Positions 34,904-64,000 of a DNA stretch of 64,000 nt are shown here, piece after piece (position 1 is the first letter of the stretch; the number at the start of each line of letters is the position of its first letter). The position numbers and the translations under genes were made by a program. Origin of the DNA: Monocercomonoides exilis PA203. Its lineage: Eukaryota; Protista; Preaxostyla. The notes below the pieces were generated by a model. That model worked only from the letters and a program-made list of their open reading frames with translations, made no database searches and was not told where the DNA came from. The stretch is taken from the NCBI GenBank assembly GCA_001643675.2, contig LSRY02000001.1:682001-746000 (forward strand), given 5' to 3'.

Positions 34904-34975
34904 GGGCCTGACCGGGAATTGAACCCGGGACCTCTTGCACCCAAAGCAAGAATCATACCACTAGACCATCAGGCC
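34904..34975 (-). tRNA. tRNA-Pro(TGG)
   Basis: Reverse complement GGCCTGATGGTCTAGTGGTATGATTCTTGCTTTGGGTGCAAGAGGTCCCGGGTTCAATTCCCGGTCAGGCCC. Anticodon arm CTTGC-TTTGGGT-GCAAG. Confidence 0.95.
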
Positions 34976-35128
34976 TCTTTTACAGGATAAAAACGATATG
35001 GCCATATCATAACGTATTGTGAATGTCAAATCATTTTAGATCTTACTATTACGTCGTGATTAATTCAAAACGGTTGTGGTTTTATCACGACGGGCCGTAT
35101 CACGGATTTGCAAAAATGATGTTTGTTG

Positions 35129-38100
35129 TAAGCCAGGGTGACTGACTGACTTTGACTTGGAAAAAAGCGAATTTTGACTGACGCGAGGGGAAAAAATCCC
35201 GTCAGAAAAATTATATGCGATATTTGTTATATTTTTAATAACAGAATATTTTCAATTTGCTTATTAATTCATAATAATTATTTTTTTTAAAAAAACTATT
35301 GATCGAAGTTTTCGAATTTTTTTCTATCTTTTTTTAATTATGGGGAACTGACGGAACTGACGAAGGTGGAAAAATTTGATCAAAAAACGTCCCATGGAGT
35401 CAGTGGCTGGCAGTGTCACAGAAAAGTATTCAATGGGTGAAGAACAAATATAAATTAAAGAAGAATCGGAAAACAGCCTGTTTGATATCTTCATCGTTTG
35501 ATCTTCTTTTTTTAATTCTGATTAATTTCAAATGACATATTTCAGGGCTGATGCATTCGGAAAAAGTTTAATTTAACGAAAAAAGTTCATTGCTTATTTG
35601 TTTATCTTGAAAAATGTGGAAACTCAAAATATGTTTCAGATTTGTTTTGAAAAACATCTTTTCAGAAGTTGTTGAAAAATATACAGATAATTTTTTTTTC
35701 GCTTTTTCTCATTTTTGAGATTTGCAAACTGTATCTTCTGGGCTGTGTCTTATACAAATAACTTCACATAGCATCGCAGTTAGCTCTTAAAAAGTTATTT
35801 CGATGAAAAATATTATCATGAGAGAAAAAGATATTCTTTGAACGTGTGATCGTTGAAATGCAATTCAACAAGTTTGTTTCTTCTTTGATTATCTTCTCTT
35901 TTATTTTTTCATATACACAATATTTTTAAAGCTGAAAGGAATAAAGAAAAAACAAGTTAACAAATGTTCCGTTATTTAAGAGAACAGGAAGAAAGCATTC
36001 CATTGAAGATTTTCTTATGAACAATTTATCGATGAGGAAGGAAAATATCATAATGTCAACGTTAATCAATCAAAATGTGTCAATAACTTATCTGAAGATA
36101 AGAGCATTTTATTTTCGTGTTTGCACAAGTCCTCATTCTTCAAAGTTATTATTCATATTTTATTTCCATATCTGATAAGAAGGTTAAGAGCATCAAAAAT
36201 TGCAATCGAAAAAATATTACATTTAAAAGAGCCTTTCTGTTTAGTTCTAATTGTTTAAAAACAATTAAATTTGCAATTTCAATTCAAGATATATCGATTT
36301 ATTTCAACTTCGAGAAACAGTCTTTCTTTCCACGTTACAATCAAATCCACAATAGATCTTCGTTTTTTCCACTTCTTCTTCATCCTCCTTCTCTTTTCCT
36401 TTTCTCTTCATTGCATCATCATTTATGTATTTCACTATCAATCCATTATTTCAATCTTCTTCATCTTTTCCTTCCTGAACTTTCTTCTAACTTTTTAATT
36501 CATCCACAGATAGACTTAATTTATTTCGTTATTCATCTTTTTAAAACGATGAACCGCAGCAACTGATTGACCCTTCGGTTCCGAATGTTTTTACTATTTT
36601 TTTTAATAGACAACGAATATATGGACGAATGCGACGAGGTGTTTTTATTGATGCTTTTTGTTTCAGGTACTATGCAGTTATGATATCTTTGAGGTTTGTC
36701 TTCATCTTTTTCGTACACTCATCTTCTTTTACCGAAACGATATATATCTTTTCTTCTTCATTCTCAATGCAAAGAAGAGAAGAGAAGAATACAGAAGAGG
36801 CAGAAGGAGATGAGCAGTCATTGTTGTCTTTGATGTTTACTCGAGAAATCAGCCCTTCCAACGTGTCTGCAACGTGATGAGTTATAACGAACAAGGCAGC
36901 ATGATATTTATCGAAAAGGATCTTTGAAAAATGTTTGTAATTACTCTGCGAGCATTTTGAGTTTTGCTATTTTGTTCGCTTTTACTGATAAAAGCACTGG
37001 AGGAGGAAAAGTCAGTTGTTTTTTGATCTTCATTGCGGAAAATATAAACGTGCTCCTGAAGATCATCTGATAAATTTTCTCACTCTCCTTTTCCAACGAA
37101 AATTTTGCTGCAAGCATTGTTATCTATCCAGTCAACACTTTAGGTTGTAAACAACTCAAAGAAGCGATATGAAAAGTGCTAACATTGTGAAGAACAAAAT
37201 AAATTGCATTAACTGAGAATAATGGGACATGGCCAATGCTGGATTACACAATACAATTTCACTGCTTTGATTGTGCTGGCTGAACTGGAGCAGCGCGAAG
37301 AGGGAGAGGGAGGATAAAAGGGAGAAGAAGAGGGAAGCAAAGAGGGAAAAGAAGATGGAGGGAGGGAGGTGATGGGAATGAGGAGAAAGGCGGGTATACG
37401 ACTGCGCGCAGGGAATTTGTGGAAAGAATAAAAGAGAACCAGGGGAAGCTGGAAGAAGCGATGGCGCCGCTGGTTGTGAAGGCGCTTGAGCTGGTTCGGC
37501 TGAGGTTTGTGAAAGCAGTTGCAAAGGCTGAGGCTGATACTGAAGCCGATGCAGACAAGCAGCATTCTGTGGAACCTGAAGTGCACAGTTCTTCTCCATC
37601 TGATGGCTTTCAATGAGAAATTTCAAGAGCAGAAAAGAATTGGGCTTCGGCAGTGCACAAACATTGGATAGGACAGCCATTTTACAAACCAGAGCCGTTG
37701 CATATGTTTCATAAGAAGTTATCAATGTTGATTTTGGGAGCTAAACATTGAATTTGATAAGGAAAGAAAGTTGCTAAAATCAAATGCAATTTAAAGAACA
37801 TCTTATTGCTGGTGTTGTGAGGTTTGTAAAATGATATTAATCATCTTGGATTGCCTTGCAAACTGCTTTGTTTTGACCGAAAAAGATGAACTGACAAGTT
37901 AAGATTTGTGTGTTACATTGAGAGTGATCCAATAAGGTTTAAAGGAGAAGAACGAAGAATGTGAGAAATTTATTACGAAGAAATGATTTGCTCAGATGAA
38001 CACGATTCCATAGAGATAAAAGGAGGAGAGGAAAAAACAGATAAAAAGAAATTGAGAGAAGGTTCAAATTTGGATTATAGTCTATTATAAAACCGACCAA

Positions 38101-39959
38101 GGTTAATAGAGATGAAATCAAATGATACAAGGGCAGAAGTTAGTAATCTTGAAATGAATGAACTTGCAAAAAGAACATTTTAATGGCAAAGAAATTTTGT
38201 GCCAGCAAGAGAAGATATTATTAGAATTCCCATCGTAGAACAAACACAAAATTTTCAAGATCTTTTTTAATATTTTATTCGAAACAGAATAACAATTGTT
38301 CCATTGTGCTTTTCAAAACAATTGATGTTTTATTTGACAGTTATCTTTAATTCCTTGTTAATGTCTCTTTGCAAATTTTCATCTCATTTTTTTATAAATA
38401 AAAATAATAAAAAAAAGAACGTTATTGTTTTTTCATATTGAAAATCTTTCAAAACATCAAAGACTTTCATTTCAAAACTTGTAATGTTGTATTGACAAGA
38501 CTTGATTTGGAAGAAATGAAAAAAAATCAACTTTAAAAGAATACATATAATAATTATCTTTTCATTTGCAGTTTTTTTATCTTTCTTTTGAACATATCAA
38601 TAATCTCACTTTCTTATTGTCTCTCTTGTTTTCTTAAATTTTTTCTCAAATTCGACTTCCAACTCAAACTTCATATTCAAATATTTTCTTCCTTTCATTC
38701 AAAAAATCTCTTCAATCTTCTCAATTCTATTTCCTTTCTGAATACCCTTCAAAATTGTCTCTTCATTCTCATTCTCTTTCTCTTTCGCCTCTTCTTTCAT
38801 TCTTCTTCTCATTAATTTTTGAATATTTCCTTTGGCTGTATAATTGATCAGTTTTTTTTTTCTTTCTCTCTTTATCTCTGAAGATGAAACAAATCATGAA
38901 TAAATTCAATCCGACGAAGTGAATGACGATAAAGAAGGAGATGCTATTAGAAATGTTGTTGATGTATCGGAAGAAGAAGAAGAAGAAGATCATGATGATG
39001 AATAAATTGAAGAAGACGATTAATTGTTGAAAATTGAGAAGATGAGAGCCAATGAATGTCAACGTAGAAATTCATTGAAATTTTCTTCTTCAGGATTTTG
39101 TCTTCTTCTGGCAAATAATCTCCTTTGAATACTTTTTCACTTTCAGCTCAATCTCTTTCTCTCTTTCCATCTAAAAATACAAAGCATGCGTCAATCTCTT
39201 TTTCATTCCATCTCTTCTTCTTTCACAAGAAATCATCTTTCCTCAAAAATAATTCTTCGCCAAAGGTTTATGCCAGGCATCTTCGATTTATCTTGAATTT
39301 CATCTGTCCGTCTTTATTTTTCCTTCCCCACTTTTCTTCTTCTTCAAAACCATCTAATCCTTCGCTCTTTCAACTGTCTAAATGAAAAAATTTTTTTCCT
39401 TCAAAAAAAGTTACAGCAAACCTTCAGAACTTATTTTTAAGTCAATGTCTATATTTTATCCCATTGACAAAGCTTGCTTCCCTCTCATTCAATTTCATTA
39501 TTCCTTCCTTTATCAAGTGTTTCATCATCTGATTCTGCAATCATCCTTTCCATCAGTTGTTTTTCCATCAAATTCATCGATTTCTTGCTCTTCTGAAAAA
39601 TGTAATATTTTTGTATTCAGCTCAAATTCCATCTTTCTTAGTGAAAAAAAACATAAAATCTATCAATAGGCAAATTTTTAATAATGCAAACCAAACAACT
39701 TTCCTTTAATGAGAGCATATAATTGAAAAGAATAAAATATTTCTTAGAATAAAAATAATAAGAATAATGGTTCATTTTTTTGGAACTGAACCAATAACAA
39801 AGTCATTTGTCAAGGAAAAAATAGCTGAATGAATTTTATGAAAAGATATCCATGTTAAAAAGCCTTTTTGAATAAAGATTTTAAATAGAAACATTCTGAC
39901 GTGAAAAAATTCTGCTGACTGACATAACCATCGATTTTTCGATCCGTCACCCAGGCTTA
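35129..39959. mobile_element. hAT-like element 1, decayed interior
   Basis: Perfect 8-bp TSD GTTTGTTG (35121-35128 and 39960-39967). TIR TAAGCCAGGGTGAC / GTCACCCAGGCTTA. Subterminal CTGAC repeats. Confidence 0.85.
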
Positions 39960-40501
39960 GTTTGTTGATCATGATTTTTTTTTCTTTCCATTTCGTGAGT
40001 ACGAAGTTTCAAATACATGCAGCATGAAGATATGTTTTATGTTATTGTGTTTTGCACACATATTTATGATCATTAAACTCATCTTTTTTTCAGATCTTAT
40101 GATTTTTTTAAAACATCGTTTTTTTCACTTAAATTGACGAAAACATAACCTACATCGGAAGTTCAAAGTGAATTTGCTTTTTTAATGAAAGTATCTGCGA
40201 AACAGAGATTCACAGCAATGTTTTTTACTTATAAAGAAACTTTTGCGTTGGATATCACTAAAAACATTTTTTTCATATCATTTTTTGTTCTAAACGGGCA
40301 ATAAAGTTCTATTTTTTAAGTTGTTTTTTCTGACAAAAATTGTTTTTTAAAATAATTGTCAGTTGTTTATTATTTTTAATAGTTGATGAAAAATATACAA
40401 AAACGAGATGTGAAAATTATTGGAGAAAAAACAAACGTAATAAATAAAAGAATTTAAGAAAAGATATCAATTCCGATGAAAAAGATGCAAAGGACAATTT
40501 T

Positions 40502-43500
40502 TTAAGAACTGTTAACATTCAAAAGATACTCGAGAACAGTTTGCTTGTGTTGGCATTGTTTAGAACTGGGCTCTTTTTGATTCTTGCAGGATTTTGCTGG
40601 TGCTTTTGCAATTCACAAACAATCGTTATCAGGAGTCTGGCTGTGTTCTGTTTGAATAAACTGAGTGGAAGAAGGAGGATGGATGGAGGAACGATGACAG
40701 TGAATTTTCTTTGAAGGCATTAATTGTTCCAGATTGAGAGATCGTGGTTGCGATATTGAACTTGAATATTTTTGCTTTCCCAATGTTGGTTGAGACGAAT
40801 GAAAACTTGGATGAGTTTCGATTGAACTTGACGTTGATGGAAGAGAAAAAATTGAAGGTGGAGAAGAAGTTAAATGAGAGGTATTAGTGGAAGTTACTCC
40901 TTCATTCATAAATGTCTCTTGTGATGATTGCAACTTAATGAATGAGAAGGTGTTGTTTGATCCGAAATAAGAATTGTTGTTGGAGGTTGTGGAGATGCAG
41001 ATGAAGCTGGTTGAGTTGTTGATGAAGATGAGGTTTCATTTGAAGATGAAGAAAGGTTTTGTATAGGTGGGAATAGAACAGAAGAAGAATTAGCTAATGC
41101 TGAAGTTAAAAAAGAGGAATTATATGAAGAAAAAAGTTGCTTGGCAGACTTCCATTGATTAGGAAGCAGCCATTTAAAAGAACAATCCGTATCATCGGAA
41201 ACAATACTTTCATCGCTTTCAGAAATTGAAGAAATTTGAGCATCTTCATTCAAAGTTGTCACCTCTTTCTGATCCCCACTGCTTTTGCCTTTTTTTTCGT
41301 TGATCTGAATTTCTTGCTCAGTTGAAACATCACCTGAATAAAAAAATTAATATGGTATGTGAAAAAAATAAAAATTTAATTGTTAATATAAATAAATTCA
41401 ATATTAAGCCTCTGTGACACTGATTTTTCACGTGAGATTTGTCGGTCGAATTGTATTTCTCTTGTCGAGACTTTTTTGTTTTTGAAAGTTTAAAGTTCTT
41501 TGATACTATTCACTTTTCAAGCGTTGATCTCAAATTTTCTATTAATTATTTTTTAAAGAAGCTTTTCAAATTGAAATTTTTGAGTTTTGAAATTTGGAAA
41601 ATAATAATGATACTTTCGAGAAAAAAATAAAATACGGCTCAATGATCAACGCATTCAATTGTTCTTTTCGATGAAATCGCATCACTTTTGGTTTGAACAT
41701 ATGTTCATCATTGAATGATATTCTCAGCAAGATGACTTTTAAACTTAAGTGTTGAAAAAATTGTGTGATTTTCCAAACACTTTTTATTCTGTTTGGTTGG
41801 ATTAACTCAAATTTTGAAAGAAGAGATAGAATCACAGGACTGCGCGGATCAAGTTGTGATAACAAATGGACCATTCGCCTTTCTGTTCTGTGTTGATGAT
41901 GCAGTTTGCAATAATTGAATGGAAATAATGCAATAATTTGTTTTTCTTTTGTTTTTCACAAATAATGCATGCAGTGTTAGATGGAGTTAAATGGTTTTAT
42001 ATGATTCAACTTCTTACAAAGCAGATTTATCTGCTGTTTAACAAAAAAAATAACAATCAAGAGGGATGTTTAAACTATGCAATTTCTGCAGTTTGATGAC
42101 TTCTTCGAAATGGTGGAGGAAGAATTTAATTTGCTTTATCTATTCAAGCACAAATAATTGCGTTTGACACAATTGAATGTTTTATAAATATATTCAATCC
42201 ATGCAACACATTGGTGGTTATCATTCTCATTAAACCTCAACTTTTTTGACATATATCCAAACATTCATTGCAGCAATTACAGAAATGAAAAATGAAAATT
42301 GTGGTTTCTGTGCTTTCTCAATTTGTGATCGTAGAGATTTTTCAACAACAATTCAAGAAGAACTGAAAGATTCAATTTTGTCTTTTTCTTTGATCTGATC
42401 ATATAAATAATCTATTAATTACCTTGTTACTCAGTGCAACTCAACGCGCCAGAGCAATTCATTCTCGATTCTATAAGAGATCAGGGGTTCTAAAGATTTA
42501 AAAATTCGCAGCTTGAACAAGCCTTCTGGAAGGAAACACACAAAAAAATAAGGCATTTTTTACAGATTCGATTTATATTCAGAATGGAAAACTTAAGTGA
42601 GAAATTTGAAGAAAACAAAAACCATGCCATTGTTTCACTTTTTTCACTCTTCTTATCAGGTATGATTGCATCCATTATTATTGATTGTGCTTTTGATGGA
42701 ATGGAATGAACAATGATGAATTTGCAGGTTTTCATTTAAAGAAGAAAGATGCATACATATTCAGAGATTCCGAGTAAAGAGAACAATGCAGGAGAAAATT
42801 TTCTCTGTTCAATGCAATCGGATGGTGCTGAGAAGAAAAGTCGTATTCAGAACACAACGTTTGTAGATGCAGAGCAGACATCAAATGAGCTGAATCTGAA
42901 GAGGTGTTATAAACGAGCAAAAAAGCAGTTTCGGAACGGCTTGGAAAAATGCTGTTACCTGATGCTATCTCGATACCTCCCTGCAGGTAATTACACATTC
43001 ACCGGGATGCTGTAGTAGCTGCCAGCAATTCCCACGAGAGCACAAACTCATCATATGAGACACAAAATATTACAATCCTCCCTTTCAAATGGCAAACTTA
43101 ACATTTCGCATAGGTCACATCCAGAAGAGTTTTCAATGTCACATTTACATGAGGTTCAACAGCCCCAATCGCTACAAATTCATCAACCGTCTCTCTTCCT
43201 ATCCGAATTTATATGCAACAACCCTCCATTCGATGCCAAACATCCAATCGAACCTCAGTCTCTTCTCCTCTCCCTCTCTCCAAAAGCCTCTCTCCTTCTC
43301 TCCGCATTCACCACGATCTTCCTCCTTATCAAACAATATTTTCTCAATGAACGTATTGTCGCCTTTCCCATCCGTTTATGTCATCTCTTCCACAGCCTTT
43401 TTCAATCGTCATTCTCTCCTTCCATAATGCATATATGACAAATATCCTGTGACAGTCTTCTTCAACAAAAAGTCCAGCCAGCTCGCATATGCCTTTCAAG

Positions 43501-45501
43501 CGAACATTGTTTCGATCAATGAATTCTTTTCGACAATTTACATGTTCTTATCATCTTTCATTCAATTAAAGTCTGATCTTAAATAAAAATATTCTATTCT
43601 TCTTTTTTTTCATTATAAGCTCTTTGTAAAGAATTGCATCTTAAATTTTTGTTTCAATTATGCCTGAGAAGTTTTATTTTAACCTTGTTTGCTTCGGAAA
43701 AATACTTGTATGATAATTTCAATATTATAAGATTTCGCTATTGAAATCGATTTATGAGATTGAATTCCAGTTTTGCTATTAAATGAGGAATTTCGTTAAT
43801 GATCAAGATAAAAATTATATGAAACTCACTCAATCAAATTTCAAAGGAAAAAAGTCTTTTAAATTATTATATTATAAGAATTAAACATGCGTAGCTTATT
43901 GATTGTATTTATAATATTCTCATTGCCAACAATTAAAGCAAGGCTGATTTGAACAAAAGATAGTTATTTGAGTTAAAATATGAATCTAAATCGTGAAGAT
44001 TTAATTAAACTCGACGAAATATTACATTAATTATTGTTTCAACAACTCGACTGATCTATGTCAAACGACTGATCTTTGTCATTCGACTGATCTCGACAAA
44101 GATCTGTCGATTAACCACAATGAAATTTTAATAAGAACTAAAAAATAATTTTTGATTTTTTTATTTTTGACAAAAAAAAACTTTTTATTATTAAATATAA
44201 AATGATTAAAACTCAAAAAAATGTTTAATAATCAGAAATGCAATTTAAAATATCGAAAAGAAATTATAAATAATTAAAAAAAAAAAAAAATAAACAGTTA
44301 GAAAAGATAACGTTTTATCGGTCGACTTGTCGAGTCGCTCGAAAAATGTCGGTCTGTCGCAGAGGACTAGTCAATATGGGTAAAATATGTAAATACAAAC
44401 TATCTTCAAGTGCATGTAAAGATGTTACACTTGAAGTTGGAGTTGAACTTTGGTTCAATCGATTAAGTAATCTGGCTTATATTTTTCATTTGCCAATTCT
44501 TTTTTCTGTCTTTTTTGCTCAGCTTTTGTAATTAGATCAGAGAGGAAAAGTTGATTTGCCTCAAAATCTTCCTCCGATAATGGGTTTTGCAATATGTGAT
44601 AATTTGTTAAACAGAACGCAACGTAAAAGTATTCAGCAATTGAAGAAATTTTTAAGGGCCAAGGTCGACGAAATATTGTAAATAATGTTTTCAAACGACC
44701 AAAAAACCGTTCGACGATTTCTCTATGTGCTGCAAGCTCTGGTGTCCCTACAGGTTTGGTTATTATTGCTCCCAATTCACTTTTAGCACCAATATAAGCA
44801 GAATCTGCCATGATTTTTCCTCCATCCAAACGTGCTGCGAACTGAGAGTAATGCTCACGAAACACGACATAGTCGTGAACTGCTCCGCCATGAACCTTGC
44901 TGACTGTGCTTGCAGTTCCTGTTTTTGGATTCACTCCCACTTCAACTTTTACACAATAAATTTTGTGCTTACCACTGAAACAGTCGCTTCCACAATTAAA
45001 TTCTTTTCCTGTTTTGTTTACCGGTAAAACTGTACAGTCTAAAACAAGTGCCACCTCCTCCATTCCACGAATTCTGTCAGGTCTAAACGTGAGAAACACA
45101 TCAGATAAAGAAACTTTGACGGATTGCAAGAACGAATGAATAAGTCGAATAGTTGCATCTTGCGTTTTAAGAAAAGGTGATGTGATGAGATGAGAAACTG
45201 TTGGTGATCCAAAATGAAAAAAATTTAATAACAAGAATAACTGATCGTCCAATTTTTCAATAACTCTTCGTTTCCCCGGATGAGGGTATATCTCAGGTTG
45301 AACAAGACGAACAAGAAGATCAAACTCACTCTTTGTGAAACCAGTCATTCTGAAAAAGCCCAAATCTTTGTTAGTGAATTTGGACAATGCGTTTTCAATC
45401 AATGACAGTTTCATTTCTTCCTCTTTTTGATGAGTAATTTTAGGAAGAGCATTTCTTTCTTCAACGTGAGTTAAAATTTCCAAAAAATTAGATTGACTCA
45501 T
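40502..45501 (-). pseudogene. PHIS transposase B (exon 1 45501-44401, exon 2 41333-40502)
   Basis: 348-aa ORF with intact LDCT, ADSAY and VERFFGRLK. Frameshift near 44475. Exon 2 encodes WLLPNQWKS and is itself frameshifted. Confidence 0.85.
41405..44369. mobile_element. hAT-like element 2, inserted in the intron of PHIS copy B
   Basis: 8-bp TSD TTCAATAT/GTCAATAT. TIR TAAGCCTCTGTGACA versus reverse complement TAGTCCTCTGCGACA. CGACTGATCT subterminal repeats at 44045-44110. Removal leaves a 94-nt intron like those of the sister copies. Confidence 0.8.
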
Positions 45502-47332: not shown

Positions 47333-47474
47333 TTTATCTTTATCTTTTTTTTATTTCATATATAAAAATAACTTAGTTGAATTGTTGACAAATATTGAAT
47401 AACATGTTTCTTTTAATATTTTTTTTCTTGATTATGAAAAGATGCTTTGAAAAAATAATTGCATTATTTAATAT

Positions 47475-51532: not shown

Positions 51533-54500
51533 GGCATAGGTGTAACTGTCTACCTTTTGCAATTCTGGATTTTTGCTATTAATTTTATGATATTTGAAAA
51601 GCATAAATTATTTAAAAACTTTTGTATGGACAGATTTTTCGAAATTCTTCTTGCTTCTCATGAAAAAAAACTTTTTTTTTAAAATGACCCATAAATATGA
51701 GAATTATGAATAAAAATAAATATTAATGTAAATTTTCCAATCAATAAATAGATACAAGGCTTGTAAATATTATGTTTTCTTTTTAAATAAGAGAATTTAT
51801 CAAAATAAAGCATTTTTCAAAATCTTTTTTAGAAATGAGAATAATTTTGATCAATCCCACGATATAATATAAAATATCCAATAAATAAAATTTTGTATTT
51901 ATGCTTGATAAGTTGAATGGATACTTTCAGTTGTTATGTATACTATCCATTTATATATTGAAGAGTGATAATATATATTATTTATTTTTGTTTTATTTTT
52001 TCATTTCCATATTATGATAATTATTATTCTGATGTATTTTTTGCACTACAAACAGTTTTTATCACTTCGAAGATAATGATTGAAATTACACAAACATTTT
52101 TGTAACAGATAACTTGGTGATTTAGAATTACTTTTTTCATTATTTTCCAACTGTATTCAATTCGCATCAACCAAATTATAATTCAATTGAATAAAGCAAC
52201 GTAGATCAGTAAGAAAAAGCTGAGTTAAAAAAAAAGAAAAGAAAATGAAGGAAGCATAGTATTTTTTCTGAATAATCAATATCTTCTAACTTATCAATGA
52301 AAATTACTGGTTTTAACCCTGCAGTTTTTAAGAATAAAGCAATTAGCAAATTGCTCAATAGGTGGAGTCAATTCAAAGGAAACAAAAGGGAAATTGATGA
52401 AATTAAAGGATTGTTTGGATTTGAAAATGGACAATGGAAAATTTGATGGAAGAACGAAAGAAAGAAATGAATAGAACATCAATGAGGAAGAAGAGATATG
52501 TAAATGGAGTGGCTCATTGGTTGATGTTGAGAAGAGCAATGTGGAGATGAGGGAAACAACGATTATGAAGAGCAAGGAAGGTGGATTGCGGGTGAGTGGA
52601 GCGAGTGTGAGGATTGAGAAAGGAGAATTTGAGAACAACAACCCATCTATTGAGGGATATCCATCAGCCAGAAGGAATGCGATTTGTGAAGGGAATGGGG
52701 GGTTGAATGTTGTGAGTGTGAAAGGGGGAGATGGAATGTTGCCAAACACATCGATGTGGATATTGGACGAAGGATGCAAATTGGGAGGGATAGATTCAGA
52801 AAGAGGATCATCATATTTCATCCCCATTTTGGTAGATGTGAAGAATATTTTTCAGCCAAATGGGGATGTGGAGTTGATGATTCTGGGAAAGCTGCTTCTT
52901 CCGCGTGGTTTAACTCTGAGATAAAACATGAAAGAAGGGGATTTTGAGCTTCCATATAAGAGCACCATTGAAGAAGGTGGGTACATATCAGAGAACGAGG
53001 TGCATTCAATGATTTCATTGGAATTACTGAAAGTGATAAAGAACAAAACAGAAGTGAGTGTGTGCATTGTGTTTGGAAAAGATGAATCATCTTCTTCTAA
53101 TGGAATTGTGGTGATGAATAAGAGTGAGAGTCAATCAAAAGGAGAGAAGAATGAAGATGAAGGAGATGAAAATAACAAAAAAGTTCAAAACAACAATGAA
53201 TGGAGCATGGTTGTTATTGTTATAATAGCTGTGCTTTTTTTGATGTTTGAATTTATATTTGTTGTAGTGGTGGTGATATTACGAAAAAACTTAGGGAATC
53301 AGAAAAGAACGTTAAAAAAACAAGAATAGAAAATGAGCAGATAATGGAAAAGATGGAAAGGAGAAGGTAAAGCAATGAAAGAAGCTTTGAGATGAGTGAA
53401 ATGCCATCTACGTTGCTGGAAGGAATGACGAGCCAAATTCCGTTATTGATCGAGGATGAAGAATGCTCATCTGAATCTCCAACAACAAGCAATGATGACG
53501 ATGATGAGATTCTGAATGAAAATGATTTGTCGGTTTTTGGGTTTCCTCCTCCAAGATCTGAGAATGCTTCTGCTTCTGGAGTGCCACAATCATATTCATT
53601 CAATGTTATATCAGCGAAGAAGCCATTTCGAGAAAAGGAGAAAAAGAACATCAAAATGTTGCATTCTGTTATTCATTCAGTGCAAGGCAATTTCACACTG
53701 GGAACAAGAGCGATGGATGTTGTTGATGGGAAGGAGGTTGTTTTGGCAGTTGCAGAGCTGTTTGAGCATTTGATTTCTGTTGGAGACGAAAGGGTGGAAA
53801 TGATGGCGAGGCAGCTGTGCCCATATACAATCTTTGTTGAAGAAGGGAACGAAAATGAAATATACCTATTGACTGAAGAATTGGAGGATGAAAAACAGAA
53901 GGAAGAAATGAAGCGATGGAAGGCACCAGAAATTGGAAATGAAGATGAGGAAGTGGAAAATGATGGAATTGAGCAAGCAGTTGTATTCACACTTGGACTG
54001 ATACTCCATGAAATGACAACAGGGGAAGTGCCATTGAGCGAGTGTGAAGCCGAGGAAGCACAGGAGATGATGAGGGATGGAGTGCGACCGCTGACAGAAG
54101 GAATCGAAGGAAAATATCTGGTTGAGCTGATGGTAAATATGTGAGCAGATGAGACTAATGACAAACCGAAAAAGGACAAAGTGATTTTTTTATTGTTGGA
54201 AATGTTTGAATATAATTTCATTTAACATTGAATATTAATTTTTGCAGCAATAAATAGAAACGGAAAAATTTAAGGTTTGAGCAAAAACATAAAAGCAAAT
54301 TATTCTTATTCTTGAAATTTATCCTTCTTATTTGAAGATTAATTAAAATTTTTAATATTAAAATAAATACACATGCTCATTAACATACACAATGCTTATC
54401 GAATGAACTAAAATTTTTAAAAAACTTGTTGACAATTATTGTGTTGTTTCATCAAATAAGAAATCAACAAATTCAGAAATAATGACTGTGAAGAAAAAAC

Positions 54501-55123
54501 AATTGGTTAAAGTTCAAAAACATATACAATTAAATAACTGAACAACATACACAACATTAACAAAAATGATAATGCAAGCAACAAATAATGCTCTTTAATT
54601 TACAAGATTTGAAAAAATTCAATTTTCCTGAAACATATCATCTGAATCATCAAAGAACACTAAAAAACTGAATGTTCAACCACATTAAATAATAGTGGAT
54701 ATCTGAAGATTTATTAATATAATAACTGCAAGTATCCATTCAACTTATCAAGCATAAATACAAAATTTTATTTATTGGATATTTTATATTATATCGTGGG
54801 ATTGATCAAAATTATTCTCATTTCTAAAAAAGATTTTGAAAAATGCTTTATTTTGATAAATTCTCTTATTTAAAAAGAAAACATAATATTTACAAGCCTT
54901 GTATCTATTTATTGATTGGAAAATTTACATTAATATTTATTTTTATTCATAATTCTCATATTTATGGGTCATTTTAAAAAAAAAGTTTTTTTTCATGAGA
55001 AGCAAGAAGAATTTCGAAAAATCTGTCCATACAAAAGTTTTTAAATAATTTATGCTTTTCAAATATCATAAAATTAATAGCAAAAATCCAGAATTGCAAA
55101 AGGTAGACAGTTACACCTATGCC
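51533..55123. mobile_element. Non-autonomous long-TIR element (Merlin- or MULE-like) carrying a host-gene fragment
   Basis: ~394-bp TIRs identical by eye (51533-51926 and 54730-55123), starting GGCATAGG. Perfect 8-bp TSD GCTTCAGG. Confidence 0.92.
52360..54144 (+). pseudogene. Truncated single-pass receptor with a kinase-like C-lobe (cargo)
   Basis: Extracellular-like segment, TM helix WSMVVIVIIAVLFLMFEFIFVVVVVIL, then RWKAPE / AVVFTLGLILHEMTTGEVP / GVRP (kinase subdomains VIII-XI). Several stops and no 5' end. Confidence 0.75.
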
Positions 55124-56384
55124 GCTTCAGGATTCAATCTTTTCTTCATATTGACTCGATAGCGTTCGTTGGCGATTCGCTTTGCTTCCACTTTCTTCTC
55201 ATGTGACTTCATCAGATATCCAATAAAACTGGAATTAGCATCTGAGACGACTGCGGTCAATGGGTCTTTCAGGATTTGAAAATTCGTCAAACAACATGCA
55301 ATAGGGAAATACTCCGTCACTCTTTCCACTTCAAACGGCCATGGACGCCTGAAAACGGCAAAAAAAGTCTTCAACCTCCCAAAAAATCGCTCAACAATGA
55401 CTCTATTGGACGCCAATTCGGGTGTTCCGACAGGTTTTGAGAAAATTGCACCCAATTTTGGCCTTGCTCCAATGAATGCAGAGTCAGCAAGTATCTTTAC
55501 TCCTCCAAATTAACCATCAAACAGAGATTAATGGTATTTAAAAAGGACAAAATCGTGTGTTGACCCTGTTTGAACGTGGCTAATTGTACAAGCAGTACCA
55601 ATTCGAGGATTAACACCAACTTCCACCTTCACACAGTAAATATGATGCTTTCCACTATAAAATTTTTTTCCATATTCCAACCTCCCACCTGGTCGATTTG
55701 TTGGAATTACAGTACAATCCAAAACAAGACCCACCTCCTTCATTCCTTCAAGACAATCTGGTCGAAAAGTGAGAAATAAATCAGTCAAGGGCACTCTGAT
55801 GTCTGCAGCAATACTGTGAAGAAGACGTATTGTTGCATTTTGAGTGTCAAAAAAAGAAGAAGAAAGCATAAATGTGTGTGTAGTGGATCCATGATGAAGA
55901 AAAGTGAGTAATAGAAAAAGTTGATCAGAAAAATTGTTCATTGCTTTATCTTATCCTTGGTGAGGAGGGATTTCTTTTTGAAGAAGTTGGAGTAATAAAT
56001 CGAACTCAACTCGAGCGAAGCCAGTGAAGCGAAAAAAAGCAGTTTGGGTATTGCCTAAAATATTCAAAGCTCTCTCAATGATTGATGTGGATTTTTTTGT
56101 TTCTTTGACAGCAGGAGAAGCAGGCATTTTATTACTTTCTTCAACTCTCTCCAATACACTCAAAAGTGAAGATTCAGACATTGATCGAAACAGTCAAAAA
56201 ATGATAACAACAAACACACCCTTCATATGTAAATATTTTTGTGATCAAAAATGACCCATGATAAAAAACAATGGATGTTATTAAATCTCATTGGAACTTA
56301 GTCGATCTTTTTGGAATGATATCAAACTCATTTCAAAAAGTTAATGTTAATACGATATAACTAAATAAATTCGTATAAGTTCTT

Positions 56385-58048
56385 GTCAGGGCGGAAACTT
56401 GAGCCAGGGATGAAACCTGAGCCACATTGATCAAAATTTTCAAATAAAGTTTTTTGATCATAATGGAGAAGGTCATACCCTCTTTGGCCAGGCTGTTGGC
56501 TACAAGTGAAATGTGTTCAATGGAAAACGATACTATCAAAGCAATATATGCCTATGACATTTTAAACTTTTCTGAGCGAGAAATTGAGGAGTGTAAATTG
56601 ATATCACGTGTATCATTCCAAAGAGCTATCAAAGCGTGAAACGAATGTGGAAAAATAAGAAAGTGCGGAAGACCGACTCTTTTTACCATTTCAGAAGAGG
56701 ACAAATTTGAACAGCAAATATTGGCAGAGGTGCGCAATGGAAAAAATCCAACAAAGAAATTCATAGAGCAGATGGTTTCAATGCATTGTTTTTATATTTT
56801 TATTTAAAAATTTTTTTTATTTAGGCCAACGAGTTGTTATTGAAGAAGCGAAAAGATGATGAAGATACAAAAAAGGTGGACAAACATTTGGTCGATAGAT
56901 TTTTATCTAGAAATCCAAAAATTGAACTGGTTAAGCCGAAAGCTTTACCAATTGGACGTGTAGCCCACACATGCAAAATGGTTTTAAATCCATTTTTTAA
57001 TTGTTATGATATGTATATGCAGCAAATAATACCTCTGCCACAATTGATTTTTTATATCGACGAAACATCAACATCCTTTTCCGACTCGGAGCAAGATTTG
57101 GTGGCATCATCTTCTTCTACTCCTTCATCTATTATTGCTGAGCCATCTCTTCCATCTTCCACTATCATCGTATTTATGACAAGTGCGGATGGCTGCAGAT
57201 ATATTACTCCAGTTCTGATCCTATTAAAAACAATTCCCAACGAATACAGACTTGCTACAACCTCACTTGAGATTTTTATTCCAACTGCAAATGGACATCT
57301 CTCTTCAAATATATTTCTTGAATTATTAAAAAATAATTTCTGCCGGAAATATTGAAAAAATAGAATCAGATTGGAGAAAACTTTCGACATGCAGCTCTTA
57401 TTATGGACGGAGGAGTGGGTTATTTTCAGGAAGATATAAAGAAAGAATGCAGAGATAACTTAATTGATATGAAAAAATTACCATCTCACACATCCCACAT
57501 TCTCCAGCCAAACGATCAATTCATTTTTGCTAATATGAAGCGCGTTTTTTCAAAATCAAAGGATTGTGGCATGGTAACTTCAGCATCTGCGAGAAGAGAA
57601 GCCTTTGTGAAAGTTCTGAAAAATGGAATAGCTTCAGCAAGCTATCCAGAGACGATTATCGCATCATGGAAAGTGAGCGGAATGTGGCCAGTAAATAAAG
57701 AAGACATTCTCAGACACCTTCCAGATTCACCTCCAGAATGGGCTTAATCCGAAATTGAGCCAAAAAAAGCTCCTGAAGGTTCGTCTTATGGAGCAGTTTA
57801 CAGAGCTTCCGATAGGCTTGAAAACCTTTTTAAATAAACAACTTTTGATCTCAATTATTCTTCTTTATTTTTCATTATCTCTCTTTTCTTTCAATCCAAT
57901 TGAATGTTTTTAACATGTGCAATAAAGAAATATTGTATTTTTTCATCATTTTGCACTAATAAAAACTCAATTTCAAAAATATAAACTAAAAAATGAAAAA
58001 AATATTATTATTCATGAAAAGATCACTGGCTCGGGTTTTCACCCCCAC
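56385..58048 (+). mobile_element. pogo-type transposon (pogo-D)
   Basis: GTCAGGGCGGAAACTTGAGCCAGGGAT versus the reverse complement of the right end, GTGGGGGTGAAAACCCGAGCCAGTGAT. TA at the right flank. Confidence 0.75.
56463..57837 (+). pseudogene. pogo-like DDE_1 transposase, decayed
   Basis: GRPTLFTISEE, YIDET, MDGG, LPSHTSHILQPND and SWKVSGMWP. One intron, plus stops and a frameshift. Confidence 0.85.
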
Positions 58049-58055
58049 TATTCGT

Positions 58056-59055
58056 TGAACTTTTTCGAATTGAATGCATATTTTTGATTTGACTCAATCA
58101 ATTTGCCTTTAGTCGATCTTATTTGATTTGACTTAATCAAAATTGATTAGAAAAGATCTTTTTTGTGATCAAAAAATCAAAAATTACGTGAAAAGTTTGA
58201 TCATTATTATTGAATGTTCTTAATGTTTTCAATTAAATAACAGTTTTTTTTTAAATATTTTTATATGTTCATCATTACGAGATTTTTCATATGTTTGCAC
58301 TATGTATTATTATCATTATAATCAATATTATTGATGTTTTTGTTATAAGTTTTTCATATTTGCTGTGTTACCCAAAGTATTCGAATAGTTTTATCTTTTA
58401 TTTTTAGCTGATTAAATGAAAGAATTATTTGATAACATGTTTGTTTTTATTATTTTTTTGTTTTTTTTTTTGATTTTTTGATGTGAATCATAAAATCATG
58501 TTTATTAAAAAGCTAACATCTATTATTGTCTATTAAATTTTCAATGTTTTCAATATTTTCAAACAAATAACATTATTTAAGTATTGAGTGAGTGAACAAA
58601 AGCTCTATTGTTAATATATCTGTTTATTTTTTCACTTTTTTATTTTGATAATTTAAGACTTGTTTTATTATGATCAGCATATTTTTTCTTATCATATCAA
58701 TATATTTTTATGTGAAAAATTTAAAGAATTGAATAATTTTATGCTTTTGTGTTTTTTCCAAAGATAATAGATAAACAATAAAAATATAAAAATTTGACAA
58801 CATGAAATTCAACGTTTTTCAATTTAAAAAATTAATATTTTTTCACTATTTTTATTAGCGTTATTTGTGAACAAAAAATATATTAAATTTTGACACGAAT
58901 TTGATTGGATTCTGAATTGATCATACACCCACAATTTTTGATATTTGCATTGACTCAATCAAATCGATTTGTCTCGATCAAATTTGCATTATATTTAACT
59001 CATTTGCTTTAGCAAAGGCAAATAATGTATGACCAGTTCAAATCGCATAAGTCAC
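58056..59055 (-). mobile_element. Non-autonomous PHIS derivative U1 (ends resemble copy E)
   Basis: 58056-58165 resembles 61446-61556, and 58944-59055 is nearly identical to 63705-63816. AT-rich non-coding interior. Confidence 0.7.
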
Positions 59056-59058
59056 AAT

Positions 59059-60476
59059 AGACCTTAAACGAATTGAGCAGGTCAATTCGAATTGACTAAG
59101 TCAAAACGTTTTCAGTCAATTTTAATGGTTTTGACTCAATCAGTTCGGTTTTCCTTCTATTTTTTTTGTGATCAAAAAATCAAAAATTATGTATCAATTT
59201 AGATTAGAATTATGAGAAGTTTTTTCTGTTTTCTGTTACAGAGTGGTTTGTTTTTAATTGTTTTTTTATAAATGTTCACTTATTTATTGTCTTTTATTTG
59301 TTTGCATTAAGTTTTTTTGAGATCATGAAAAATACATCGAAATTTTTGAAACAAGTTTTTTTAGTTATTTTTGATTTAATAATAAGTTTTTAATGTTCAA
59401 ACTGTTATTTATTGTTTTAATTATGGAGTTAGTATTCATTATTTCGTTGGTTTTATTTCAGTTTTATTTTGAAAAGATGTTATTTATTGAACAATTGTTT
59501 TTTCATAAAACTTTGTCTGAATTATGAACTATATAATCTATCTTTTTTATTTTTTATCAAGAAAAGAATTGGTTAAATGATGAGTGGTTAAAAATTTTTT
59601 CAATTCGAATTTGTTTCATTGTTTTTTCTGTTTTTTTATATTTCGTTATATGTTTCTAATTCTTTTTTATTCATTGAATTTTTTTCTTCAAATCAATCAA
59701 AATTTATTAAAATATAATATTCAAAATATGTTTCTAATGAAAAATTTGTAAAAACAAAATATAATATTGAATTAATAATTTTGAAAAAATCAAAACATAG
59801 ATACTTTCGTTTTTTTAATAAAAAACATTCACATTATAATTTATATGAAATGTAATCCATTTATTCTTTAAATATTGAAAGATATGGGTGATTCTTTTTG
59901 AAAAGTCGCAAATGTTTAATTTTCAAATAAATCAATAATTTCATATTTTTATGAAATTTTTGTCCGCGAACACCAAACTTCACAAACATGGAATCAGTAT
60001 TTTGATAATGCTATTTCAAACATTCTTAAGAAGATTTGTGAGGTGAAACAGAAATTTGAGCAAAATGGGTGATTCTTTTTGAAAAGTCACAAATGTTTAA
60101 TTTTCAAATAAAATTAAATTTCATATTTTGCTCAAATTTCTGTTTCAGCTCACAAATCTCCTCAAGAATGTTTGAAATAGCATTATCAATGAATAGATTT
60201 GATTGAAGTGAAGTTTGATATTAGTTAACAGAAATTTGAGCAAAATATGCATTTTTTGATTTATTTGTAAATTTAACATTTGTGACTTTTCAAAAAGAAT
60301 CACCCATATGAAAAACTTTATTTTTGAAACTTTCTATTGATCATGCACCCAGAATTGAATCAATTGGTTTTCACTCAATCAAAACGGTTTTGAGTACGAC
60401 TTTTTGGTTTTATGAACCACTAATTGGTATTAGTCAAATCGAATACCGCATTACTGAGTCATTTCGTTTTATTTCT
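59059..60476 (-). mobile_element. Non-autonomous PHIS derivative U2
   Basis: AAT|AGACCTTAAACGAATTG...CATTTCGTTTTATTTCT|ACT. Family GATCA..CACCCA motif at 60339. Confidence 0.65.
59886..60305. mobile_element. Compound MITE (partial copy plus full 239-bp copy starting at 60067)
   Basis: Two GGGTGATTCTTTTTGAAAAGTC left ends, one right end, and outer ATAT flanks. Confidence 0.8.
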
Positions 60477-60479
60477 ACT

Positions 60480-61439
60480 TGATTGATTTGACTGAGTCAC
60501 GAAAATGTGACTCAGTCAAATCGATTTTTATCTGGTTTATCGAATTTTGCTAATTTTTATCGAATTTCCCTCAATCTCGCCAAGGGTGAAATTGTGATTT
60601 TTATGATCACAACATGTGATCGAGCATTTTTTTGTTTTGTTTAAATTTAAACTATTAAAAGCTCATGAACGTTCAACTTTTAATATGATGTTTGTTTTAT
60701 TATGTATTATTAGTATTTTTTTTTGTAGTTTTTTTGGTTTGATTCTGGTTTTCGATAACTTTTCATTTTTGTAATTCCGACTTTGTTATCATGTTTTTTG
60801 ATTGAAATCTATTCTAATATTTTTGTTTTTTATTGGATGAACGTTTGCACATACGAATTTTTGTGATTTTTTTGGTTTATACAAAATTTTTTAACATTTT
60901 ATTATTTTATAATGTGTATCATGTTTTGAACTGAATATTTTAATGTTATTCTTATTGTTTTAATAACAAATAAAAAGATTAAGCTATTGCGAACAAAGTT
61001 CTTTTGAAATTTCATTCATTTCAAGCTTTTTGAAAAGTTATAATAAAAACAAAATATTTTTATTAAGAATTATTTATTATTCGCGATATAAACATAAATA
61101 ATTTTTAAATGATGTGACAATTTCTTTCTCACAATTTCAAATTTATTAAAAAGGTTAAACTCAAAAATATTAATGTTTTTTTGAAATTTTAATATAAATT
61201 TCAATAAAATAATTTATTGAAACAATTATTAATGTATTTAATTCAGCTTTCAGAAAGAAAAAACAAAGTTTTAACAAAAAATATTTTTTGTTTAAATTAT
61301 GATCAAGAAACCCAGAATTGAAAACATCGTATGTGACCGAGTCACATCCAATTTGACTGCATCTCAATGGCATTAGATCGATCTTATTGGATGTTTACCG
61401 ATCAAATGCCACTTGACGCAGTCAAATCAATCATTTTCT
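60480..61439 (-). mobile_element. Non-autonomous PHIS derivative U3 (internal-deletion relative of copy A)
   Basis: 61299-61433 is a close reverse complement of 109-243, and 60490-60575 of 2335-2418. Confidence 0.85.
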
Positions 61440-61445
61440 AATAAT

Positions 61446-63816
61446 TGAACTTTTTCGAATTGAGTGCATATTTTTGATTTGACTCAATCAATTTGCATTT
61501 AGTCAATCTTATTTGATTTGACTTTATCAAATCTGATTTGAATAAATCATTTTTTGATCTTTTTTGAAAACAATTATGAGTCAATTACGATCAAGATATT
61601 GATTTAATTTTTCAAACTCTCTTCCTTGTTGGTAGATCTTAATAATACAACAAGTTTGTGAATTCTCTTTTTGATTGTTTTTAGTATTTATTGTTTATTT
61701 TCAACATCTCTTCTTCTGATTCGGATCATAATGAACAATTTGATACTTACATTTTTAACACGAGCGAGAGAAGATCAACAGTTGAAATTTAATTTATATC
61801 TGTATTTCCGAAAAACAAAAAGCTCATTCGATCCAATTTTGTTTTCTTTTTTGTTTTTGTTAGGTTTTTTTTTCATTTCATTTTTAATAATGTATTTTGA
61901 ATATAAAACAAACAAATATATAGAAATTTTATAAATAAATGCAATTTTTGTTTTTCATTCAAAAAAATAAATTCTGAATTGGAAATATTAATTATTAAAG
62001 ATTATAAAAAAGATGAGATGGTTGCTAAAAGAAGCCAAAGAGAAATTTAATGATAATCACTTTTTCTTCAGCAACGATTGGAGAACAGATGGGGATTTAT
62101 TTTGTTTTGAATCAACAGAAGAGGAAGAAGAAGCAGTTGATGAAGATGATGATGAAAAGGAAGTAGAAGGTTGTGATTGTGAAAATGAAGGAAAAGGTTG
62201 AGTTGAAGATGGAGAAAAAATACTTATCGACTTCCATTGCTGCGGAAGGTGCCAAGCTTGTGAAATATCACATTTTTGATTTTCATCAAAATCATTTCTT
62301 TCTTTTTCCAAAACCTGTTCCCTTTGCTCGCTTCTTTGTACTAAAACTTCGCTATTCGCTCTTTCTTTTCTTTCTTTCGCTTTTTCTGCTTCGTATACAC
62401 TTAGATCATCGTCAGAAGCATCTAAAATAAAAAAATATGGTAAAATGATGTTTATAAAAATGAAAAAATTGTAATAAAAAATTAAAAATAATGGTAAAAA
62501 AGTGAAAGATAAGCCTCCAATTTTTGCCAAAATTGTAGTTATTGTGGGTGTCAGGGTATTTTCTGGATTGAGTTTATTTTTCATTTTGGAGAAATATTTG
62601 GCATTGGCCATTTTCTTTGCATCAACTTTTCTCATGTAATTCAAATATAATTCCTCCAAAAACTATGAATTTGCTTCTGCATCTTTCTTTGTGAGTGGAT
62701 TTTGTAATATATGAAAGTTAGTGAGGCAGCATGCGACGCAAAAATAGTCTGCAACCTTCACGACATCAAATAACCAAGGTTTTCTGAAGACGGTGAAGAG
62801 TGTTTTGAGCCTTCCAAAGAATCTTTCAACAATGACACGATGAGATGCAAGCTCAGGAGTTCCAACGGGCTTTGTAATAATCGCCCCAAGCTCTGGTTTC
62901 GCTCCTATGTTAGCAGAACCGGCCAAAATCTTTGCTCCTCCAAGCTTTTGAACAAATGTGGGGTAATGTTCTTTGAAAATAGTGAAATCGTGAGTTGACC
63001 CAGAGTAGATAGAACTGATTGTACTTGCTGTCCCCACCTTAGGGTTCACTCCCACCTCCGCCTTGACACAATAAATGTGATGCTTCCCTGAGTAGTATTT
63101 TTTTCCAAACTCCAACCTCCCTCCAGGTCTGTTTGATGGAATTACTGTGCAGTCAAGCACAATTCCCACCTCCTTCATTTGCTCTAATCGATCTGGACGA
63201 AATGAAAGAAAAAGATTTGCAAGTTGAGGTTTTAAATTTGATGCTGTTGAATGAAGAAGTCGAACTGTTGATGTTTGAGATTCGTGTTTTGATTGAGATA
63301 TGACGTGAGTTAAAGAAATAGAACCATGGTAAAGAAAAACAAACAAAAGAAAAAGTTGTTCATCCAAAGATTCGATTGATTTTACACTTCCGCGATGATG
63401 TTGGGCTGATGATGAGAGAAGACGAAGATGCAAGTCGAATTCATAACGAACAAACCCAGTCAGTCAGTGAAAACCGAAAGATGTGTCAGTAAATTTTTTG
63501 CAAATTTTATCGATGATTGATTGCTGATCATCATCAGATTTAATCTCTATATGAGATGGCATCACATTTCTTTTTTCTTCGCTCTTTAAAATATCGAAAA
63601 ATGGAGATTGAGACATGAATGATGAAGTTTCAAAAAAGTTAAATACAAAAACACCCATTAATAACAATTATTATCGATCATATTCGCACCCACAATAATT
63701 GTTATTTGCATTGACTCAATCAAATCGATTTGTCTCGATCAAATTTGCATTATATTTAACTCATTTGCTTTAGCAAAGGCAAATAATGCATGACCAGTTC
63801 AAATCGCATAAGTCAC
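61446..63816 (-). mobile_element. PHIS transposon copy E
   Basis: AAT|TGAACTTTTTCGAATTG...CGCATAAGTCAC|AAT, with subterminal arrays at both ends. Confidence 0.75.
62057..63616 (-). pseudogene. PHIS transposase E (GC-AG intron 62514-62422)
   Basis: LDCT, YSGKHH, AGSAN (catalytic Asp lost) and VERFFGRLK. One frameshift and one stop. Exon 2 encodes WHLPQQWKS. Confidence 0.85.
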
Positions 63817-63819
63817 AAT

Positions 63820-64000
63820 AGACCTTAAACGAATTGAGCAGGTCAATTCGAATTGACTAAGTCAAAACGTTTTCAGTCAATTTTAATGGTTTTGACTCAA
63901 TCAGTTCGGTTTTCCTTCTATTTTTTTTGTGATCAAAAAATCAAAAATTATGTATCAATTATGATCAGTAATTCTGTTATTTTTGATGTTTTTCTTTGTA
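63820..64000 (-). mobile_element. Start of the next PHIS-family unit (U4), running off the window
   Basis: 63820-63960 is nearly identical to the U2 end at 59059-59198. Confidence 0.65.

Follow-up and report, generated by a model that had tools for sequence, protein, structure and literature searches.

PIF/Harbinger and pogo DNA transposons stacked on the 5' side of tRNA genes in Monocercomonoides exilis

The transposon stack beside tRNA-Pro

The window analysed here is a stretch of 64,000 nucleotides (C1:682001-746000) in the 82.3-Mb, 101-contig long-read (Oxford Nanopore Technologies, ONT) assembly of the oxymonad protist Monocercomonoides exilis (PMC8767320). Two transfer RNA (tRNA) genes were called in it by ARAGORN, tRNA-Val(CAC) at 4380-4453 (+) and tRNA-Pro(TGG) at 34904-34975 (-), while transposase genes were located with Pfam and tblastn. 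tRNA-Pro, which is intact, has a T-run on its 3' side and is one of four identical genomic copies, anchors a gap-free stack of transposons that occupies positions 34976-64000, with 8 bp between the first element and position +1 of the gene. The stack is composed of four PIF/Harbinger elements (here PHIS), two pogo elements and four non-autonomous PHIS-type units (U1 to U4), and six unrelated transposons are nested within it. The spacers between units measure 0-8 bp and no host DNA was found between them. All the PHIS transposase genes of the stack lie on the strand of tRNA-Pro (-), and both pogo genes lie on the opposite strand (+).

The boundaries of the units were set by a whole-genome DNA search with positions 45701-64000 and by direct reading of the junctions, and the limits of the first element, PHIS-B, by comparison with six close copies from other contigs that are 87-96% identical as protein. 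The list of units, their orientations and the sizes of the spacers had been put forward in a first-pass annotation of the window, and all of them were reproduced by tblastn, DNA search and direct reading. Its placing of the first element 8 bp from tRNA-Pro was confirmed by the PHIS-B copies, and its view that the transposases are too divergent for simple tandem duplication is borne out by a pairwise identity of 50-63% among the five PHIS genes of the window (tblastn).

PHIS-B (34984-45699, -) is separated from +1 of tRNA-Pro by the 8-bp spacer TCTTTTAC (34976-34983) and has the termini AGGATAAAAACG... and ...CGTTTTAGTTCT. Similarity to its relatives breaks at 35128/39968 and 41404/44369, with outer limits at ~34984-34991 and 45699, and PHIS-B is therefore read as a single element of 2.9 kb that carries two foreign insertions. 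It contains an intact open reading frame (ORF) of 361 amino acids with a DDE_Tnp_4 domain (44458-45540, -) and, at 41149-41172, the tail motif discussed below.

Directly outward lies pogo-B (45700-47829, +), whose DDE_1 ORF (46712-47329) is antisense to tRNA-Pro and which is interrupted by a miniature inverted-repeat transposable element (MITE) of 244 bp (47471-47714). It is followed by TTTAGT and by PHIS-C (47837-50199, -), with termini AGAACTTTTTCG... and ...AAAGGTCT and a gene (48978-50048, -) that has three stops in the transposase frame. PHIS-D (50203-56383, -) measures 2.36 kb without its nested insertions, one of which is a MITE at 50432-50672, and its gene is found at 55156-56193 (-). 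The second pogo of the stack, pogo-D (56384-58050, +), retains a degraded DDE_1 ORF (57340-57738), again antisense to tRNA-Pro, and is followed by TTCGT.

The non-autonomous units follow. U1 (58056-59055, -), succeeded by AAT, is of the PHIS-E type, with an identity to PHIS-E of 89% at the low end and 98% at the high end. U2 (59059-60476, -), with MITEs nested at ~59882-60309, shows the terminus AGACCTTAAACGAATTG, of a type that adjoins tRNA-Asn and tRNA-Asp at other loci, and the terminus of U3 (60477-61441, -; then AATAAT) is of a type that adjoins tRNA-Gly and tRNA-Ala elsewhere. Beyond them lies PHIS-E (61448-63816, -), with a gene located by tblastn at 62594-63616 (-), two in-frame stops in the transposase frame 62060-63616 and the tail motif at 62231-62254; its copies elsewhere in the genome are 88-94% identical, apart from two weaker partial matches at 68-81%. 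U4 (63820 to beyond 64000, -) is the start of the next unit and is 98% identical to the start of U2. U1 to U4 are devoid of ORFs; their termini and subterminal repeats are of the PHIS type and are oriented like those of the autonomous PHIS elements. The rest of the stack sequence is made up of Stowaway-like MITEs and a 3.6-kb element with terminal inverted repeats (TIRs) of 408 bp. The stack extends past the end of the window, with a further minus-strand PHIS ORF 13 kb on. Logan unitigs from four public runs of one strain branch exactly at 45699/45700, 47470/47715 and 50199, which backs these boundaries; they are 100-380 nt long and do not bridge the junctions.

A second example, independent of the first, is found in the same window, where PHIS-A (ORF 263-1330, +), 6 bp, pogo-A (ORF 2695-3267, -) and 8 bp precede tRNA-Val(CAC). 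A MITE is nested in pogo-A at ~3510-3760, and this second stack probably continues to the left of the window.

Both kinds of element belong to known superfamilies, PIF/Harbinger and pogo (Tc1/mariner), and are unusual in their choice of target. PF13359 (DDE_Tnp_4) is matched above cut-off by PHIS-B, PHIS-E and the copy L001, with E values from 1e-20 to 4e-22. Short TIRs, AGAACT(A/T)AAACG... and ...CGTTT(T/A)AGTTCT, are present in PHIS and were set by where seven copies diverge. The PHIS flanks can be read as a 3-bp target duplication that is exact for PHIS-C (AGT/AGT) and PHIS-E (AAT/AAT) and matches in two of three bases for PHIS-B and PHIS-D; flanks are inconsistent across copies of the PHIS-B family. 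No Myb/SANT second ORF of PHIS was found, and the 253-residue downstream ORF and the C-terminal tail, both Ser-rich and acidic, are without any Pfam match, which leaves room for a divergent Myb. As for pogo, an intact copy of 353 amino acids matches PF03184 (DDE_1) at 5.5e-13, above cut-off, and PF03221 (HTH_Tnp_Tc5) at 5e-4, just below it (20.4 versus 22.2 bits). The pogo flanks are TA/TA for pogo-B and TG and TA for pogo-D, with TIRs readable at both ends. DDE transposases are the only enzymes that PHIS and pogo encode, between TIRs, and the reverse transcriptase that marks the Ty3 and TRE families is absent.

Position and polarity at tRNA genes across the genome

PHIS transposase matches number at least 114 in the genome and fall into 77 same-strand sub-clusters; pogo-like matches number at least 108. 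For a sample centred on transposons, the first 20 PHIS sub-clusters by contig order were used and 10 kb were taken 3' of the ORF; the remaining sub-clusters were judged by coordinates only. For a sample centred on tRNAs, the 63 best-scoring RF00005 matches in the genome were picked blind to transposons, and the comparison with all 77 sub-clusters relied on a set of 80 known tRNA genes. Loose regular-expression scans for termini gave too much noise and were set aside.

A tRNA gene lies within 10 kb 3' of the PHIS ORF in 11 of the 20 sampled clusters. The 11 tRNAs are all different genes (Thr, Val-CAC, Pro, Gly, Asn, Lys, Asp, an intron-containing Tyr, Ala and two Val-AAC), each is the sole tRNA in its 10-kb stretch, and all 11 are on the strand of the PHIS ORF. 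A random stretch of 10 kb holds a tRNA gene with a probability of ~0.02, given the 153 genes predicted in an earlier 454 assembly (PMC6759080) and a genome of 82.3 Mb. On this basis the adjacency has a P of ~1e-14, or 6e-12 (9/17) when three stretches in or beside the window are left out, and the agreement in strand has a P of 5e-4. In two further sampled clusters, the tRNA lies 189 bp past the fetched stretch and the cluster is a continuation of the tRNA-Pro stack, respectively.

The distance is constrained too. A PHIS or pogo terminus is found 6-11 bp from tRNA +1 at 10 of the 11 sampled genes, and likewise at the tRNA-Phe gene beside another PHIS-B copy; one of the Val-AAC genes has no transposon terminus beside it. 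Every tRNA of this set is followed by a T-run. Repeat coverage ends abruptly at the tRNA, and the stacks are always on its 5' side. At tRNA-Thr, for instance, four PHIS ORFs lie on the minus strand together with the tRNA, which follows the first of them on the 3' side at a distance of 1,130 bp.

The same picture emerges from the tRNA-centred sample, in which a PHIS or pogo ORF occurs within 10 kb upstream of 17 and downstream of 4 of the 63 best tRNAs, with ~1.8 expected per side. Among all 77 PHIS sub-clusters, a tRNA is present no more than 12 kb to the 3' side of 22, on the same strand in 21 cases, and a same-strand tRNA is present on the 5' side of only one. As for pogo, there are 21 pairs in which a pogo and a tRNA are no more than 10 kb apart, and the pogo lies upstream in each of them. 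Four pogos adjoin the tRNA directly, with 865-1113 bp between the tRNA and the part of the ORF that was matched, and all four are antisense to it. Of 38 pogos that have a PHIS no more than 8 kb away, 29 occupy the strand opposite to it. The two superfamilies thus have opposite fixed polarities, which a general selection on the direction of transcription can hardly be reconciled with. The first-pass annotation had proposed that DDE transposons target the 5' flanks of tRNA genes, and that this be checked by distance and orientation to tRNA 5' ends; on the samples covered here the proposal holds, with strong enrichment and with fixed distance and orientation at many different tRNA genes.

Elements of one family are found at different genes. 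The PHIS-B family occurs at tRNA-Pro, at tRNA-Phe and within a tRNA-Gly stack, with unrelated spacers. Three of the seven full-length tRNA-Pro genes have PHIS or pogo ORFs directly upstream, and one of them anchors a cluster of six PHIS on contig C22. Another possibility is that the pattern is an artefact, caused by tandem duplication of one element, by carriage of the tRNA as transposon cargo or by long-read misassembly. The highly repetitive nature of the region and the short-read unitigs that leave its junctions unbridged speak in favour of this explanation; against it, the transposases are far from identical, copies cease to resemble one another at the terminal repeat in front of the tRNA and have differing spacers, the same architecture is seen on at least 10 contigs and with at least 11 tRNA species, and tRNA-Pro(TGG) also occurs where no PHIS or pogo ORF is listed in the 10 kb upstream of it. 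An artefact is thereby largely refuted and must be held extremely improbable.

In addition, two different PHIS-B copies end 5-6 bp upstream of a gene-like sequence of 91 nt (L003:7201-7291, +, and its equivalent to the left of L006:2605). It shows an 8-bp terminal stem, the A-box-like sequence TAGCGCAAGCGG, the B-box-like sequence GGTTCGACTAC (in the L006 copy) and a T-run, and it was not called by ARAGORN, with introns allowed too, or by Rfam. From these features, it may be an unrecognised RNA polymerase III (Pol III) gene.

Proposed integration upstream of tRNA genes and its alternatives

PHIS and pogo are associated with tRNA genes at a set distance and with a set polarity, the targets are varied, and the elements are stacked with spacers of target-duplication size. 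Active, polar targeting of the tRNA 5' flank by both kinds of element, with repeated hits building the stacks, is the very probable origin of this arrangement. PHIS and pogo would integrate by cut-and-paste ~6-14 bp upstream of the mature tRNA 5' end, in an insertion window that coincides with the expected Pol III start or lies slightly upstream of it. Their polarity would be fixed, with the PHIS transposase gene toward the tRNA and the pogo transposase gene away from it. The internal A/B-box promoter would be left untouched, so that the tRNA gene would probably stay usable and the site could be hit again, and repeated hits on the same few base pairs would then generate head-to-tail stacks. 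By analogy with Ty3 and TRE5-A, we infer that some component of the Pol III initiation complex, for example TFIIIB or TFIIIC, would serve as the anchor of a tether for the transposase or for a complex that includes it.

The junctions of the tRNA-Pro stack fit the repeated use of one small target. In particular, the AGT present on both sides of PHIS-C is also the inner flank of PHIS-D, PHIS-B and PHIS-D adjoin the TA duplications of pogo-B and pogo-D, and, when the elements are stripped one by one, the insertion points fall between -6 and -14. Newer elements may push older ones outward, and it is plausible, with the junction sequences in accord, that a stack represents an ordered insertion record with the newest element proximal.

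An explanation by survivorship has to be weighed here, in which PHIS and pogo would insert more or less at random and only copies in harmless places, such as the upstream flanks of tRNA genes, would persist. Such an account finds some ground in a compact genome with a mean intergenic length of 870 bp (PMC6759080) and in the fact that about one third of the sampled PHIS clusters are not beside a tRNA. However, it leaves unexplained why the terminus and +1 are 6-11 bp apart at as many as 11 different tRNA genes, why elements are nearly absent downstream of tRNAs and why two superfamilies have opposite fixed polarities. Tolerated sites are also not scarce, because repeats form ~46% of the assembly (PMC8767320) and other transposons nest freely in the stack. 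Survivorship is thus regarded as improbable.

Several observations count against active targeting and temper its acceptance. Targeting is deduced from surviving copies. Of the 20 sampled clusters, seven lack a tRNA within 10 kb, and these include a 99% copy of PHIS-D that is truncated and a cluster whose intact terminus borders unique DNA. An Rfam scan revealed no other Pol III genes at the 13 loci that lack a tRNA. A few copies have the wrong orientation (e.g., C45:94976), the list of tRNAs covers 80 genes, against the 153 predicted in the 454 assembly, and a target duplication is clear in just two PHIS elements. An age gradient along the stack was not found, and stop-codon counts along clusters are without trend, many of these stops possibly lying in introns. 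Lastly, neighbour pairs of the stack recur elsewhere at 80-92% identity with differing outer neighbours. The recurring pairs are PHIS-B and pogo-B, pogo-B and PHIS-C, PHIS-C and PHIS-D, and PHIS-D and pogo-D, and they are found at L004 (C22:1133800-1143799), C63:38.5-42.8k, C7:1369k, C21:1307k and C34:422-425k.

This last point leads to a further explanation, according to which elements target the termini of resident elements, or whole blocks are duplicated, so that arrays grow on their own and the tRNA is no more than a founder's landing place. Besides the identical pairs of neighbours that several loci share (PHIS-B|pogo-B, pogo-B|PHIS-C and PHIS-D|pogo-D), it can rely on a 282-bp direct repeat of 98% identity that spans the U1|U2 and PHIS-E|U4 junctions (58926-59207 and 63687-63968), and on the fact that pogo-B and pogo-D each adjoin the high end of a PHIS with a 0-bp spacer. 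The 282-bp repeat points to recent duplication or gene conversion in the stack, because U1 and PHIS-E show no more than 89% identity at their other ends, and together with the recurrent pairs it suggests that composite duplication or co-mobilisation contributes to the stacks. Yet single PHIS or pogo elements adjoin many different tRNA genes with no need of an older element, stacks have a sharp end at the tRNA, whose 5' side they invariably occupy, and solitary elements too have a fixed orientation to the tRNA. As the source of the whole pattern, self-targeting or block duplication is accordingly given little credence, and active targeting of the tRNA flank remains the preferred reading.

If the transposase is tethered to the Pol III machinery, the C-terminal tail of PHIS offers a candidate for the contact. 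The nine-residue motif W-x-L/I-P-x-Q-W-K-S is invariant in 19/19 PHIS copies, which come from families only ~50% identical in the core, and lies ~115 codons past the DDE core. It is preceded by a charged stretch, followed by a Ser-rich tail, and forms the sole invariant island in a region where residues otherwise do not align. Motif and transposase are found in one polypeptide in annotated M. exilis proteins, and in the PHIS-B family the motif opens the separate 253-residue ORF. An exhaustive HMMER search yielded 507 relatives, and among the 163 proteins retrieved the motif is present in only three, all of them annotated M. exilis proteins. The closest named relatives outside M. exilis are three copies in Blattamonas nauphoetae, another oxymonad (GCA_033064195.1, L027-L029; ~33% identical); in this small sample, there is no tail motif and no tRNA on the 3' side, and the copies lie among ordinary genes. 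A motif common to the tails of PHIS and pogo was not found, and pogo copies share different C-terminal motifs. The PHIS tail motif may tether the transposase to TFIIIB or TFIIIC. In the integrase of Ty5, a targeting domain in the form of a short linear peptide lies within a disordered tail and tethers the enzyme to a chromatin protein, Sir4, with heterochromatin as the target. The role proposed for the PHIS motif is of that kind, while the class of element, the partner and the target differ.

Two features of the PHIS reading frames are worth recording. Many long frames among the genome-wide matches (up to 592 amino acids) have exactly one in-frame TGA, which may correspond to a short intron or to readthrough. 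Moreover, the stretch between the DDE core and the tail motif is T-rich, contains stops and has an intron-like look.

A wider formulation is that two unrelated superfamilies each evolved Pol III-directed polar integration at the tRNA start site, as a first instance for DNA transposons of the cut-and-paste kind, with the PHIS motif as the tether and the stacks as chronological records. Taken as a whole, this formulation is put forward tentatively and would more readily fail than hold.

Other elements of the window are distinct from this system. PHIS-B is interrupted by a hAT-like element (35129-39959) with an 8-bp target site duplication (TSD), GTTTGTTG, and the TIR TAAGCCAGGGTGAC; it is outside the targeting system. 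A second element with that type of TIR (TAAGCCTCTGTGAC) and an 8-bp TSD lies in PHIS-B at 41405-44369. Both insertions are hAT-like, with TIRs of the form TAAGCC...GTGAC, and a Pfam search of the ORFs in the two elements gave no match. The 3.6-kb element in PHIS-D (51533-55123) has 408-bp TIRs that are 99% complementary and the 8-bp TSD GCTTCAGG; its ORF gives a kinase-like match, though a weak one. It moved recently, because a 100% identical copy is found at C1:801515-805104, and it is not tRNA-targeted. Outside the stacks, positions 14545-32601 (-) hold ORFs of 4159 and 1859 amino acids in one frame, with a single stop (27022-27024) between them, and represent either two neighbouring genes or one giant gene, in which the stop would be read through, be an error or lie in an intron.

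Relation to known systems and significance

The closest parallels to PHIS and pogo are provided by retrotransposons. Ty3, a long terminal repeat (LTR) retrotransposon of the Metaviridae in Saccharomyces cerevisiae, inserts 0-20 bp upstream of tRNA genes, within a few bp of the Pol III start, and is targeted through the binding of TFIIIB (PMC7175516, PMC5911963). PHIS and pogo resemble it in leaving the internal promoter intact and in their position near the expected Pol III start, and they differ in that Ty3 is a retroelement that uses an integrase and inserts in both orientations, whereas they are DDE cut-and-paste elements of fixed polarity. In Dictyostelium discoideum, TRE5 elements insert antisense ~44-54 bp upstream of tRNA genes and TRE3 elements in sense downstream of them (PMC5911963). 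TRE5-A, TRE3 and DGLT-A are similar to PHIS and pogo in having tRNA targets in a compact protist genome, and TRE5 and TRE3 also in being orientation-specific; in contrast to PHIS and pogo, however, they are all retrotransposons and are found at larger distances (13-150 bp).

Among DNA transposons, Dada comprises DDE elements that specifically choose multicopy genes for small RNAs, tRNA genes among them (PMC3706591, PMC8869645). Dada inserts inside the gene at a primary sequence that it recognises, with one target per lineage. PHIS and pogo, on the other hand, spare the tRNA gene, end upstream of +1, are found at many tRNA species and belong to other superfamilies, and insertion inside the gene as in Dada is not what they show. 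With respect to canonical PIF/Harbinger elements, PHIS has in common DDE_Tnp_4, short TIRs, probably a 3-bp target duplication and MITE-like derivatives, and it is distinguished by the motif-bearing C-terminal tail or short downstream ORF in place of a detectable Myb/SANT ORF. No report of a strict tRNA-flank position and polarity for PIF/Harbinger was found in the literature searched. PHIS and pogo thus work like Ty3 or TRE5-A, are members of neither family and are not Dada.

Within the same literature, targeting upstream of tRNA genes is described in reviews and primary papers for retrotransposons only, namely Ty1-Ty4, Tj1 of S. japonicus, the Tca8 beta LTRs, TRE5, TRE3 and DGLT-A (PMC7175516, PMC5911963). 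A 2022 paper on target-specific eukaryotic DNA transposons lists Pokey (28S ribosomal DNA), CryptonV (microsatellites) and Dada (inside small-RNA genes), and neither of two M. exilis genome papers (PMC8767320, PMC6759080) mentions transposon targeting or tRNA flanks. The docking of DNA transposons upstream of tRNA genes therefore looks undescribed as far as this literature goes, in agreement with the first-pass annotation, which knew of no PHIS or pogo that targets tRNA 5' flanks.

That mobile elements target tRNA genes as a safe haven is a standard example of convergent evolution. If the present reading is true, DDE transposases of two superfamilies do so with base-pair precision and a fixed polarity, and the principle holds for an integration chemistry of another kind and reaches a third supergroup of eukaryotes, Metamonada. 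A small transposase with a candidate motif may direct insertion beside Pol III genes without disrupting them, which bears on how mobile elements choose their sites and on safe-harbour gene delivery. As for M. exilis itself, PHIS and pogo account for part of the large unclassified repeat fraction of its genome, and they mark the flanks of its tRNA genes as hot spots of structural change.

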